This document shows, piece after piece, positions 39,680-45,229 of a stretch of 64,000 nucleotides of DNA (position 1 is the stretch's first letter; the number at the start of each line of letters is the position of its first letter). Location of the stretch: IMG/VR virus record IMGVR_UViG_3300041416_000287, positions 176,449 through 240,448 of that record. One strand, written 5' to 3'. Made by a program: the position numbers and the translations under genes. The notes beneath the pieces are model-generated. The model had not been told where the DNA came from and made no database searches. It was given only the letters and a program-made list of their open reading frames with translations.

Positions 39680-40303
39680 TTAGTCGCTCATGTCGAGGCT
39701 TTGATTGAAATTAAAGCGATGAGTCTCCTTGAATTCAGGAGGAACTGTTCGCGGACGCTTACCCGGGGAAGTGCACGATTGTTCATCCTGTGACGTCACA
39801 TCACGCTTGCGCTTGAGGCCTGGGCTTGGCACAAGCTTAACAGGAGATGGTTCCGACATGATCGCTCCCACAGTCCCAGGATGTGGTCCTGGAACCTTGG
39901 GCGCAGGTACCGGCAGAGGCTCGACGCGGGGAGCAGCCGTTGGAGGCATAGCCATCCTCCGAGTAGTTGCACGAAGCCAGTCACAAAATCGAAAGATGTA
40001 TTGGTCATGAAAAGGACAATAGAAAAAGAAAGTACCGTTTGGTGCCAGGGGTCGACTGCAGTATCGAGCCTCTCGTGACCCGAACGAGTCATGATGGAAC
40101 TGGTGAATACAACCGATTTTATCGTCATCTTCCTCAGCATTATACATCGTGAGATGTTCCGGATCTTCAAAATCGCAGATTATCTCCGGCCACCAACAGA
40201 ATTCGAACCAAATCCGATGATCTGTGAAATCATCGAGACGTAACATAACATGTTCGCGGTGACTCTTCATCCATCCCACTGCGTATTCAATGACGGGCTT
40301 CAT
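39680..40303 (-). CDS. Zinc-finger paralog family member 1
   Basis: W.K.H..H...W..FC...ICDFE...H..M...GC...CSRPL...CPFH shared with the 40992 and 43421 proteins. Confidence 0.75.
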   Translation of the reverse strand: MKPVIEYAVGWMKSHREHVMLRLDDFTDHRIWFEFCWWPEIICDFEDPEHLTMYNAEEDDDKIGCIHQFHHDSFGSREARYCSRPLAPNGTFFFYCPFHDQYIFRFCDWLRATTRRMAMPPTAAPRVEPLPVPAPKVPGPHPGTVGAIMSEPSPVKLVPSPGLKRKRDVTSQDEQSCTSPGKRPRTVPPEFKETHRFNFNQSLDMSD

Positions 40304-40549
40304 GAACTGAAGGTACTTGAGGTACTTAGTGGTATGATTATAATCGGATATTAATACATCAATTTATTAACATTATACTAATTGTTGGCACATTAATACC
40401 TTGAACCCAGTTATATATTGTGTGATGTATTCGCAATTTATTGGCTCATTCGTTGCCACTTTCTTCTCTTCGATTCTTGCGAGTTTGTACTCGTAAGAGT
40501 TTTTGACAGGAATTCAATATAAACTTGGAGGGTTAGGCACTTGTCACTC

Positions 40550-40999
40550 TCAGACTAATCCCTTGAGCCAGCTGAGCCCAGGTTGCTTACGTCGCTCACG
40601 TTCCTCATCTCCAGGCTCAAACAATCCTCTCGCGGCGAATTTGCCACACTTTGGGCAATGATACCGATTTCCCTCCGGAGTGCGGCTCACTGTCGGATAG
40701 AAGCCTCTCCAAAAACAAGAACCGCACTCGAACCGTATGCGAGGGCGTTCATCTGGTACTTTCTGCTTGGGGGCAACAAGAGATGGTGCAGTAGCACATT
40801 TCGGAACCAAAGAGCTCTTGGGTTCAGGAGCTCGATCACCGAATCCGAAAGAGCTCCCTGTGCCAAAAGATCGGGCTCCGAATACGCTCTTGTGTTCAGG
40901 CGTTCCGGAACCAAATGAAAATCCCGATCCAAAGGACGGAGACCCACATGATCTTATGTGTTCATACACATAAGTTTTTTTATGTTGTCGCTCAAGCAT
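40550..40999 (-). CDS. FG-rich segment plus zinc ribbon; start uncertain (possibly an orphaned 3' half)
   Basis: SFGSGFSFGSG...SSFGFG; CGSC...CPKCG; nearest in-frame ATG overlaps the end of the upstream gene, before its hairpin. Confidence 0.45.
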   Translation of the reverse strand: MLERQHKKTYVYEHIRSCGSPSFGSGFSFGSGTPEHKSVFGARSFGTGSSFGFGDRAPEPKSSLVPKCATAPSLVAPKQKVPDERPRIRFECGSCFWRGFYPTVSRTPEGNRYHCPKCGKFAARGLFEPGDEERERRKQPGLSWLKGLV

Positions 41000-41741
41000 T
41001 AAAGCTGGGATGCTGCGGAAGAGCCCCAAATGTCCGCGGTGGTGGAGCCGCGAACAGTTGTCCACGGCCTGGACCCTGGCCGCGCCCCCGCCCGCCCCGT
41101 CCACGGACTAGCCCCTGTCCTCGGCCGAGATCCTTCGGTTCAGGGACAGTCGCTGGGGTAGCCTTAGGCTGAGGAATCGGGCGAGCAGCGAATGCTGCGG
41201 GCCCAGTGGTAGGTGGTTCCTGTACAAGCGGGTCCAGTTCCATGAAGTCAGGGGCAATAACTGGGCGCGGATTCAATCGTGGCCGCTTTGCCGCTGGTTC
41301 GGCTGTTCCATCAACTGGAGGCCCCGATTGAGCCTCCGGAATAGCAATTGCATGGGATCGTTTCGGCGCTCGCGCAGCTTCCGATTGAAGAGCTGCTACC
41401 CCACCAATGATAAAGTTCCGCTGCGCCCGGAACCAGGCGTTGAACTGACTTGAGAAGATATCATGTGAGTGAAAGGCGCAGCGAGAGCTTCCGAAAGCCA
41501 ATGGTCGACTGCATCGTTGCCCCGCCGAGGGTTGATTCAGGAATACGTAATCGCATCCAAACGGAACAGGTTCGCCACTCATGCTGTGAGAATGCGGGTC
41601 TTCGTATTCACAGAGCGCGTGAATAGCACAGAACCGGTACCAAATGTCGGCAGAGTCAGCACTGCTGACATCTAGGCGGGGAGCATGGTAAGGATGATTC
41701 TTGAGCCACACAACGATTCGAGCTGCGTAGGTGGATGTCAT
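40992..41741 (-). CDS. Zinc-finger paralog family member 2 with RGG-like tail
   Basis: WLKNHPYH...WYRFC...CEYE...GCDY...RCSRPL...CAFH. Confidence 0.75.
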   Translation of the reverse strand: MTSTYAARIVVWLKNHPYHAPRLDVSSADSADIWYRFCAIHALCEYEDPHSHSMSGEPVPFGCDYVFLNQPSAGQRCSRPLAFGSSRCAFHSHDIFSSQFNAWFRAQRNFIIGGVAALQSEAARAPKRSHAIAIPEAQSGPPVDGTAEPAAKRPRLNPRPVIAPDFMELDPLVQEPPTTGPAAFAARPIPQPKATPATVPEPKDLGRGQGLVRGRGGRGRGQGPGRGQLFAAPPPRTFGALPQHPSFNA

Positions 41742-41787
41742 CGTATGAGATAGACTATTGCTTTAAATACAATAGATCATTAATATA

Positions 41788-43198: not shown

Positions 43199-43420
43199 GA
43201 CTGGTATCCGAATGGTAGGTCTACTCTCTTAAACCTAGTTTCCCGTTAATATATCAATTATTTATTGATGTGCTAATCACTAGGATCATAAAGCCTTGAG
43301 AATTAATAATATACGAATAATAAGAAATGATGGCTTCTATCTATATGAATCTTGCGAGTCTGTACTAGTAAGAGTTTTTTTTTGATTCTGATCTTTCACC
43401 TCACTAGACCGACGAACCGG

Positions 43421-44128
43421 CTACGCGACTGGAGCATCCGTATAGCCGATGTTACGATATTGGCACCATACCTTCAAATCGGTAGTTAGCGGAGCGATGT
43501 CTCCGACTCCAACATCAGCCCATCCTTGTCGCTTCGCCCGGGCTTCATCCGGGATGTAACCTACACACACCACGTGCCCAGAAGTAATCTGGTAGACGAT
43601 GACGTTGTTCTCGACCGCCCGGTACAAATTCGGGGCGAATGTCACCACGTTGAGCGAAGTCTTTGGCGGAGGCGAAACCGGCTCGATGCCCTCAGGAGCC
43701 GGAGTACCGCCAAAGTCGCCGATGATGATCGGGGCCGGCTCGACGCGCTTAGGAGCTGGAGTACCGCCGCGAACGCGTGCAAAGTCGGCATCGATCGCGG
43801 CGAGTTGTTGCGAGATCCAGTGGCGGACCTCGGTTGAGAAGACGGGATGATTGTGGAAAGCACACCGATCTTTTCCCGGAACCAAGGGCCGATTGCAACG
43901 CGTGCCCTTGAAGGACCCCAAGGAGAAGATGAGCGAACAACCATTCGCCACAGGCTCCTCAGTCATGCCATGATTCGTCGACCGTTCGTACTCGCAGATG
44001 ATCACAGGATCGGCACAGAAGCGGAACCAAGTCTCACCGGGAGTACAATCTTCAACATCCGAATCATAAAGATGCGCAGGATGATCCTTGATCCAGACAA
44101 CAATGCGGCGAATAGTTTCGGGATCCAT
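43421..44128 (-). CDS. Zinc-finger paralog family member 4
   Basis: WIKDHPAH...WFRFC...CEYE...GCSL...RCNRPL...CAFH plus C-terminal CVGY...PLT...WC module. Confidence 0.75.
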   Translation of the reverse strand: MDPETIRRIVVWIKDHPAHLYDSDVEDCTPGETWFRFCADPVIICEYERSTNHGMTEEPVANGCSLIFSLGSFKGTRCNRPLVPGKDRCAFHNHPVFSTEVRHWISQQLAAIDADFARVRGGTPAPKRVEPAPIIIGDFGGTPAPEGIEPVSPPPKTSLNVVTFAPNLYRAVENNVIVYQITSGHVVCVGYIPDEARAKRQGWADVGVGDIAPLTTDLKVWCQYRNIGYTDAPVA

Positions 44129-44257
44129 AGTCTAAGATGGTCTAATGGACTAGGTATGATTGATGATTAATACAACAGTTATTTATTCGATGTCGTCATC
44201 ATTAGGTATATTGGGCCTTGAAGCTGGGGCCTATGTACAGGCCTCAACGTTTTTTTT

Positions 44258-45229
44258 TCACACACAGACCAAGCGCATTCCAATACACCTCAGCCTGAGC
44301 TCGGGAGTCAATGGAGTGATCTCGCCTTGATTCAAATAGCCTACACATTCCCATTGTTCATCTGGCCTGGGCCGCAGAATTAGATTGTGATCCTGTTCGA
44401 GGTACAAATCTTCACGGAATGGATGTACGGTGATGTGAATCACATGGACCTTTTGGGCAAGACCGCCTGTCGCTTGAGGAGGTGGGGTCCTATTCTTTTC
44501 ACGACAGCGTTGGGCCTTCTTTCGAATGACATCGGGCATCCCGCCATCATAGAATTCACCGAGTTGCATCATATAAGAATCGAAATCAGCAGCCCTGACA
44601 TTGAAGGCACAGACCACATTGGTCATATCCCAATCAAGGTTCATTTTGGTGAGGAATTCAAATAGATCGAAAGCTGCCATCCAATTGGAAAAGTTGACCG
44701 TCTTCCCATAAAGAAGATCGACGAGGTTCTTCAGCGTGTCCGTGTCAAGATCAAGTTGTATGGTCTCTTGGCCAATATATTGTGTAAAGAAATCCAGCTC
44801 CAACAACACGCCCATATGAGCGGGAGTCGCGACACCATCTAATGAAATTAGACCGACGTTGGGAGGCCCCTGAAAATCTTGAGTTAGATCGGGAATCTCC
44901 TTGTAAAAAAGTCGAACCTCTCCAAGAGGTTCCTTGGCACCAATGCGAGCATCATCTTGAGCATCGTCATAGGCCTCAAGATCATCCACAATGTCCATGA
45001 CAGACAAGTGTAGAGATCGACTAGTTGGCAATGGTTGTGGCGGAAGATCGTACCGAGCCGCCACGATCTTCTGGGCACAATTTGCACAGAAATGTTCGTA
45101 GTGAACGGCCATGTGAGTACATTGTTGTCCCCGAAGTCCACCGCGGGTGAATGTGTACTTGCACTGAACGGGAGGAATGTCATCCTTGATGGCAAAGCGA
45201 AACTTCCGATTAATAATATGGTAGGCCAT
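44258..45229 (-). CDS. Zinc finger + BTB-like + ECVGY module protein (family member 5)
   Basis: CKYTFTRG..RGQQC...FCANC; AHMGVL..LDFF...TLKNLVDLLYG (BTB-like); ECVGY...PLT. Confidence 0.7.
   Translation of the reverse strand: MAYHIINRKFRFAIKDDIPPVQCKYTFTRGGLRGQQCTHMAVHYEHFCANCAQKIVAARYDLPPQPLPTSRSLHLSVMDIVDDLEAYDDAQDDARIGAKEPLGEVRLFYKEIPDLTQDFQGPPNVGLISLDGVATPAHMGVLLELDFFTQYIGQETIQLDLDTDTLKNLVDLLYGKTVNFSNWMAAFDLFEFLTKMNLDWDMTNVVCAFNVRAADFDSYMMQLGEFYDGGMPDVIRKKAQRCREKNRTPPPQATGGLAQKVHVIHITVHPFREDLYLEQDHNLILRPRPDEQWECVGYLNQGEITPLTPELRLRCIGMRLVCV

Follow-up and report, generated by a model that had tools for sequence, protein, structure and literature searches.

Tandem copies of a gene family at a variable locus of a large DNA virus are familiar from the gene accordion of poxviruses (K3L type), in which the copies are nearly identical and their number varies within populations. 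Poxviruses also encode BTB-Kelch proteins that bind cullin-3. Giant viruses hold many expanded gene families of obscure role, and here we describe one such case, a zinc-finger family, in IMG/VR virus record IMGVR_UViG_3300041416_000287. The window, meaning the whole stretch of 64,000 nucleotides that was analyzed, is the final 64 kb of this 240 kb record, for which CheckV estimates a completeness of 46%. Seven open reading frames (ORFs), each named below after its lower coordinate, lie head to tail on the minus strand of the window between positions 39680 and 45229. With moderate confidence, we read them as a lineage-specific tandem cluster in which five genes of an unnamed modular zinc-finger family, accompanied by two low-complexity ORFs, encode regulators with exchangeable tails.

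The five family genes combine an N-terminal module A, a zinc finger B, and a C-terminal module C. The canonical order is displayed by gene 43421 (43421..44128, 235 amino acids), with A at 43961-44128, B at 43829-43954, and C at 43436-43657; the linker between B and C is disordered, and the nearest relative of the protein is P0005, encoded on a 330 kb ENA contig (L003) of a related virus. Gene 40992 (40992..41741, 249 amino acids) contains A (41574-41741) and B (41448-41570) followed by a disordered tail in which a basic motif (41277-41288) and an RGG box (41058-41126) are found, and gene 39680 (39680..40303, 207 amino acids) contains A (40142-40279) and a CCCH finger B (39989-40120) followed by a disordered, proline-rich tail. 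Gene 41898 (41898..42728, 276 amino acids) retains an A module with an internal deletion (42639-42710, its middle part gone), followed by a pair of B fingers (42495-42614 and 42384-42494) and by C modules at 42144-42320 and 41934-42116. Gene 44258 (44258..45229, 323 amino acids) begins with a CCCC-variant finger, B' (45077-45163), and continues with a region termed D, a putative diverged BTB domain (approximately 44531-44881), and C (44264-44434). As for the two low-complexity ORFs, ORF 42869 (42869..43198, 109 amino acids) is without A, B, or C and contains two in-frame repeats of 43 amino acids with FG motifs, while ORF 40550 (40550..40999, 149 amino acids counted from its ATG) contains an FG-rich low-complexity segment (40838-40936) and a zinc-ribbon-like motif, C-x2-C...C-x2-C (40646-40726). 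A first-pass annotation, made by a model from the letters of the sequence, had listed seven co-oriented ORFs and described modules A, B, and C. Each of these ORFs is found at its listed position, on the minus strand, and profiles built from outside homologs recover all three modules.

None of the seven ORFs obtains a significant match in Pfam, which has no model for modules A and C. When the ORFs were compared all against all by blastp, 43421 matched 40992 (E = 1.2e-29), 41898 (6e-16), and 39680 (1.5e-12), and ORF 44258 was joined only weakly, via its C-terminal end; identity among the array copies was 23-41%. Module profiles were first made from the window only, with leave-one-out searches, and later from ORF 43421 and 55 outside sequences (hereafter, the 56-sequence alignment). 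The window-only profiles found the C module of 44258 at E = 5e-5 and the partial A of 41898 only marginally (E = 0.02), and did not find the finger of 44258 (E = 0.8), which reached significance with the wider-family profile. Searches with the external-family profiles gave per-domain E values for module A of 1.5e-15 (40992), 5.9e-12 (39680), and 2.1e-7 (the partial copy in 41898), for module B of 4.9e-18 (40992), 1.2e-6 (39680), 2.7e-8 and 4e-16 (the fingers of 41898), and 2e-6 (the CCCC variant of 44258), and for module C of 1.6e-16 and 9.9e-10 (the copies in 41898) and 2.1e-17 (44258). By recovering every module listed, these profiles confirm the architectures A-B-tail, (A)-B-B-C-C, A-B-C, and B'-D-C. 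In total, A is found in three of the five family ORFs and as a partial copy in one more, B in all five (six fingers), and C in three (four copies), and profile searches of the 240 kb record detected neither A nor C anywhere else. Outside the window, two adjacent minus-strand ORFs of approximately 175 and 179 amino acids (G000:C1:54566-55732), one of them with AATTGAT at -48, each contain at least two B-like CCCC fingers (E ∼3e-4 to the B profile), and the B finger is therefore present at a second locus of this genome.

The invariant columns of B in the 56-sequence alignment are C64, C78, C89, H92, and F97. In module A, whose signature is W-x3-H-P-x-H ... E-Y-E, one Trp and one Tyr are nearly invariant. 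The two cysteines that had originally been assigned to module A are not conserved in this alignment, and for this reason A is unlikely to bind metal through them. When the same alignment was supplied to AlphaFold for ORF 43421, the model had a mean predicted local distance difference test score (pLDDT) of 87.6, with values above 93 for residues 1-122 (A, B, and a long helix), a disordered linker at residues 123-157, and a C module (residues 158-232; pLDDT ∼90) composed of four strands and then helices; an earlier run with four paralogs had reached a pLDDT of 62, and fold searches with it were uninformative. Comparison of the better model with the PDB by Foldseek and VIA-align, using the whole A-B-C model, yielded no convincing match to a solved structure, and a sequence-profile search of the PDB yielded no match. 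Together with the lack of Pfam models, this is consistent with the earlier suggestion that A and C may be undescribed domains.

The kin of the model were found only among predicted viral structures. In BFVD, a collection of such predictions, nine matches had E<1e-3, all to uncharacterized Cedratvirus and Pithovirus proteins; those of Cedratvirus lausannensis (A0A285PXC0), Pithovirus LCPAC401, LCPAC103, LCPAC304, LCPAC104, and LCPAC202, and Pithovirus sibericum (W5S6J5) had E values of 6e-6 to 7e-4 and probabilities that were mostly 1.00. These proteins are similar in size to the A-B-C model and align over nearly their full length, but they are linked to the family by predicted structure alone and are not among the named sequence matches. 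Because they carry no annotation, the matches provided no functional information. Weaker BFVD matches linked the model to the putative SAP-domain protein FV3 049L, to a BTB protein of Orpheovirus, and to proteins of Marseillevirus.

Among described zinc fingers, zf-C3Hc3H (PF13891), WRC (PF08879), and zf-TRM13_CCCH (PF11722) have the same ligand order as B (Cys, Cys, Cys-x2-His) with similar spacing. Tandem B-B pairs align across the whole zf-C3Hc3H profile, and single fingers align to the WRC and TRM13 CCCH profiles; the best match of any window ORF to a named finger had an E value of 0.06. Unlike these fingers, however, the family has an adjoining module A and a conserved Phe after the His, both of which are specific to it.

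When an A-B-linker-C profile was searched against 1.84 billion representative proteins, 138 proteins were found at E<=1e-3, 66 of them at E<=1e-10 and 13 at E<=1e-30. Each of the 138 stands for a cluster at 50% identity; many have lengths of 170-260 residues and span the whole profile. All 20 of the clusters that were looked up were metagenomic and were either nameless or called just 'hypothetical protein'. The family is thus found widely in metagenomes, and its modules are not private to this virus. It also looks to be borne by giant viruses, because contigs that encode it carry genes of nucleocytoplasmic large DNA viruses (NCLDV) and its predicted-structure kin belong to the Pimascovirales. 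Word-index protein searches with 43421, 44258, and the 56-sequence alignment returned almost nothing besides the queries, IMG/VR scans with ORF 43421 and P0005 found no relatives, and literature searches found no publication on the family. What emerges is a small, well-conserved family that can be folded confidently, and two of whose three modules have no Pfam model.

A census of 139 family proteins counted the architectures A-B (49 proteins), A-B-C (34), and B-C (17), and also included C-C, A-B-C-C, B-B-C, A-B-A-B, and arrays containing as many as five B fingers. The earlier idea that the window holds tandem paralogs assembled from separable modules is upheld by this census, which shows that the modules, as delimited by their profiles, are real and recombine freely across the family. 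Family modules are also fused to other domains. BTB was the partner in two proteins (P0103 and P0068), and F-box or F-box-like domains in three to five, including P0131; P0135 joins an HMG box to three B fingers, P0087 alternates SAP/Rho_N segments with five B fingers and has a C-like end, and P0102 combines a MUG113 (GIY-YIG-like) domain with four B fingers. The BTB, F-box, SAP, and HMG fusions provide concrete hypotheses for the family, namely zinc-dependent binding of nucleic acids and recruitment of substrates to cullin ligases. On another giant-virus contig (L005:10001-12330), the gene for P0131, with F-box-like, finger, and C segments, directly adjoins one encoding a BTB protein of 332 amino acids.

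The fusion within the array itself is less evident. The D region of 44258 had been proposed to be BTB-like, but this ORF does not match the Pfam BTB model (PF00651) at E<=1, and nothing else in the 240 kb record matches it; a protein-atlas lookup of 44258 gave a weak BTB lead (score 0.83). What sustains the proposal is homology to P0068 and P0103, whose scores of 28.1 and 66.3 bits exceed the Pfam BTB cut-off of 20.5. D aligns to the BTB regions of both (3e-15 for P0068 and 1e-10 for P0103), and 44258 is homologous to P0068 over its entire length (D plus C, 2e-24; finger, 1e-16). Because the homologous region passes the Pfam threshold in both of these proteins, we take D to be a diverged BTB domain, and finger-BTB-C to be a conserved sub-architecture. 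In cullin-3 substrate adaptors, a BTB domain usually precedes a C-terminal non-BTB module, a layout that 44258, P0068, and P0103 match. In contrast to the poxvirus BTB-Kelch proteins, the C-terminus of 44258 is a C module and not a Kelch or MATH domain, and there is an extra zinc finger at the N-terminus. A SKP1/BTB/POZ protein of Orpheovirus offers another comparison for 44258 among the BTB proteins of large DNA viruses.

The tails of the array proteins had been grouped as a further module, E, but they have no significant mutual similarity. They are instead of several types, including the disordered, proline-rich tail, FG tails (40550 and 42869), the RGG box (40992), and short basic clusters resembling nuclear localization signals (NLS), which are present, as pattern matches only, in two tails, those of 40992 and of 39680 (39803-39814 and 39749-39760 in the latter). 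The only homology among the tails is a stretch of 79 nt common to 40992 and 42869 that covers the last dozen codons, the stop, and a hairpin. Judged by these alignments, E is a matter of composition and not a homologous module.

Comparison with the related virus places the array in a setting of conserved genes. To either side of the array, the 330 kb contig and the window are collinear. Flanking proteins are 51-82% identical between the two viruses, whereas identity falls to 28-40% between array proteins and their best counterparts. Between the same two conserved genes, the related contig contains three members, A-B-C, A-B-C, and finger-BTB-C, with the BTB gene at the opposite end of the array from that in the window. 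The window has extra genes beside the array, up to a conserved gene of 315 amino acids, that encode a GMC oxidoreductase (38074-39621) and a Fringe-like glycosyltransferase (37252-38001); both are absent from the syntenic site of the related contig, which instead has a DUF723-type gene of 442 amino acids on the other side of its array. Family members on three other contigs are solitary. In a tree of the A-B region (81 rows, LG+G4), which was poorly resolved, ORF 43421 grouped with P0005 (55% identity), and a tree forcing the three window A-B copies together was not rejected by the approximately unbiased test (p-AU 0.80).

The array resembles the poxvirus accordion in being a set of tandem family copies at a variable locus, and the first-pass annotation had called it a gene accordion. 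In the poxvirus sense this does not hold: its copies share 30-41% protein identity, and contigs from three other peat samples, at patchy coverage, contain no copy-number or junction variant. Across contigs of four runs, whose coverage is fragmentary outside the source sample, no variant joint was seen. A recent accordion was rejected on these two grounds and because the relative already has a three-member array at the same site. The low protein identity of the copies indicates that the duplications are old; at this level, substitutions at synonymous sites have reached saturation, which deprives a dN/dS ratio among the paralogs of meaning. On present alignments, the array is a lineage-specific cluster of old origin that diverges fast within a variable island, and a hypervariable island of this kind could contribute to an explanation of how pithovirus-like viruses of peat soils adapt to their hosts.

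These observations can be assembled into a working model. In the model, A is an N-terminal helical module, B a CCCH zinc-knuckle core, and C a small C-terminal domain. The fusions to SAP, HMG-box, and GIY-YIG-like domains, together with the sub-threshold likeness of B-B pairs to the zf-C3Hc3H, WRC, and TRM13 fingers, point to B as a nucleic-acid-binding finger. By analogy with the BTB and F-box fusions, C may be a targeting or partner-binding module and, because it is C-terminal in these fusions, the usual position of a substrate receptor, it could serve as the receptor part; the same partners suggest a role as ubiquitin-ligase adaptors. The cluster would then encode regulators associated with DNA, RNA, or chromatin, whose exchangeable tails (C, NLS-like, RGG, and BTB) might send different members to different places or fates, and its genes are probably driven by a common AATTGAT-type promoter and end at hairpins. 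Several results weigh against this picture. The family members stay below the Pfam cut-offs of the named fingers (20.2 vs. 27 for zf-C3Hc3H, 22.4 vs. 28.6 for WRC, and 16.2 vs. 20.9 for zf-TRM13_CCCH), and partner domains are fused to few members, some 10 of 137. No family module is present in ORFs 40550 and 42869, the first of which is perhaps not a gene. With the tree poorly resolved, the window copies may have arisen before or after the split from the relative, and a word search of sequencing runs found the virus sequence in none of the RNA runs.

Alternatively, the array could be a gene accordion whose products act on the host as effectors, amplified and diversified under pressure from it, with cullin-3 adaptors and proteins bound for the host nucleus among them. 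The strong divergence of the array genes relative to their neighbors, the difference in content between the two related viruses (seven ORFs vs. three), the fusion of the same modules to BTB and F-box domains elsewhere, the NLS-like motifs of two tails, and the compatibility of the tree with monophyly of the three window A-B copies are all in keeping with this possibility, but the low identity of the copies indicates old duplications, no structural variant was seen in the peat samples, and no BTB domain is matched directly in Pfam; we consider it rather unlikely. We are similarly doubtful of a more far-reaching proposal that retains the ubiquitin-ligase theme, in which A and C would be new domains, possibly with new folds, of a toolkit specific to the Pimascovirales, B-C would provide substrate or chromatin recognition to viral BTB/F-box ubiquitin-ligase adaptors, and the cluster would be a fast-evolving host-range island that directs one module to the nucleus, to RNA, or to degradation.

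A different possibility is that the proteins serve the virus itself, as regulators of the viral factory, the virion, or transcription comparable to RGV 50L and FV3 49L. RGV 50L, an immediate-early protein with an NLS, associates with the viromatrix and influences the expression of viral genes (PMC3418244). The predicted structure matches FV3 049L and other iridovirus SAP/orf58-like proteins by Foldseek (E = 5.8e-3, probability 0.99), and the family member P0087 joins five B fingers and a C-like end to SAP-like segments. However, the match to FV3 049L is weak (template modeling score ∼0.27) and structure-only, and the array otherwise resembles RGV 50L in its NLS-like basic motifs; the SAP domain is theirs, and Pfam detects none in any window protein. 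Core replication and virion proteins are, moreover, usually conserved and single-copy, unlike the array, and a service of this kind appears decidedly improbable. It is also unlikely, if less so, that part of the cluster is decaying, with ORF 40550 left over from recombination between members, as 42869 and the internally deleted A of 41898 may be too. ORF 40550 lacks an upstream motif and overlaps with its 5' end the terminator-like hairpin of gene 40992, neither it nor 42869 has a relative in the smaller sets searched, two hairpin repeats flank a segment of 1.87 kb, and the middle of module A is gone from 41898. On the other hand, every frame is open, and 42869 has a promoter-like motif and a hairpin of its own as well as a 129 nt repeat that stays in frame with its peptide motif kept. 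Exchangeable-tail regulators in a lineage-specific cluster remain the reading that we favor for the array.

The 3' ends of the array genes fit the 'hairpin rule' that has been described for other giant viruses. All but one of the seven ORFs have a stable hairpin within a few dozen bases after the stop (z-scores of -2.0 to -3.8), often behind an A-run. On the minus strand, such structures follow gene 39680 (39644..39677; -10.9 kcal/mol, z -2.4), ORF 40550 (40474..40507), gene 40992 (40951..40984, inside ORF 40550 and preceded by an A-run; -10 kcal/mol, z -3.1), gene 41898 (41859..41883; z -2.1), ORF 42869 (42825..42858; z -3.8), and gene 44258 (44223..44248, preceded by an A-run; -14.5 kcal/mol, z -2.7), while that of gene 43421 (43349-43382; z -0.35) is degenerate and is 85% identical over 40 nt to the one behind ORF 40550. 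The neighboring genes 45321 and 46527 have palindromes just past their stops as well (45295-45320 and 46480-46510, read by eye), and because of these two cases the hairpins may be a genome-wide 3'-end signal.

Two of the hairpins, 40951-40984 and 42825-42858, form a direct repeat of 97% identity around the 1.87 kb segment. In Logan assemblies of the source sample, contigs end exactly at both copies of a 31 nt repeat (40952-40980 and 42825-42855), and the repeat pair is therefore real, with short reads being compatible with a variant lacking the segment. The word depth of the middle contig (8.8) is lower than that of the flanks (10.4-11.3), a difference that is too weak to claim a deletion variant. 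DNA repeats D1, D7, and D8, together with the 79 nt alignment, show at the level of shared sequence that short 3' ends and their hairpins have occasionally been exchanged between members.

Upstream of the array genes, a shared element resembles the early motif of mimiviruses. A copy with an AATTGAT core lies ∼50-60 nt before the ATG of gene 39680 (40339..40369, minus strand), related copies precede 40992 (41768-41798), 41898 (42755-42790), and 42869 (43230-43265), and degenerate copies precede 43421 (44155-44185) and 44258 (∼45265-45290); ORF 40550 has no upstream element of this type. The mimivirus-type early octamer, AAAATTGA, occurs as an exact copy only before gene 40992. When 120 nt upstream of each of the 227 predicted genes were scanned, AATTGAT occurred 17 times, before 17 genes, and 14 of these occurrences were at -37 to -61, making AATTGAT a candidate promoter core. 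Approximately half of all its occurrences are in the non-coding 12% of the record. The paralogs, labeled early in the first-pass annotation, may be early genes on the strength of this motif.

Two public gene calls are corrected by this analysis. The public record cuts gene 41898 into a product of 157 amino acids and an antisense ORF, and its call of gene 44258 begins at Met78, so that the finger is lost; the longer frames are supported because the missing parts are conserved in outside homologs. Two antisense ORFs on the plus strand (42321-42809 and 43847-44170) overlap genes 41898 and 43421, and one of them is a public gene call. The 'homologs' that they match are antisense to a gene of the related virus, and these plus-strand ORFs are shadows of conserved sense frames.

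The status of ORF 40550 is less certain. As listed, it begins at a GTG and overlaps gene 40992, and its frame is open up to 41104; the sole in-frame ATG, at 40999, is 8 nt before the end of the stop of gene 40992, and the first ∼16 codons run across the 3' hairpin of that gene. With no promoter-like motif ahead of it and its first codons overlapping the neighbor's hairpin, it is doubtful as a gene and may be a remnant. A zinc ribbon had been read in it, for which all Pfam matches were sub-threshold and the protein atlas gave generic zinc-ribbon look-alikes. ORFs 40550 and 42869 were kept out of the large protein searches, and neither had a relative among the family proteins, on the related contig, or in the record; an IMG/VR scan with ORF 40550 also found none.

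Proteins encoded by the record include a family B DNA polymerase, proteins with DUF5757 and DUF5857, and a major capsid protein of NCLDV type; the public gene calls add an XPG nuclease and a thymidine kinase. When compared with solved structures, the capsid protein matched the major capsid protein chains 7yjl (9e-22) and 6ojn (6e-12), the latter of which we take to be the capsid of Singapore grouper iridovirus. These capsid matches, together with the structural kin of the zinc-finger family in Cedratvirus, Pithovirus, Orpheovirus, Marseillevirus, and iridoviruses, indicate that the virus is an NCLDV, probably of the order Pimascovirales. Its DNA was detected in peat metagenomes, where two runs contained half or more of the sampled words and small shares turned up in a further 18 (19 studies), and a second Joint Genome Institute sample contained a 1.8 kb piece with one mismatch. 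Elsewhere in the window, a minus-strand gene (6520-9108) encodes a protein of 862 amino acids with a FYVE finger (2e-16) and a PI3/PI4-kinase catalytic domain (9.5e-27), a lipid-kinase fusion that is unusual for a virus, and two further minus-strand genes encode proteins with collagen triple-helix repeats (18747-19853, 8e-28; 26104-27327, 8e-30).

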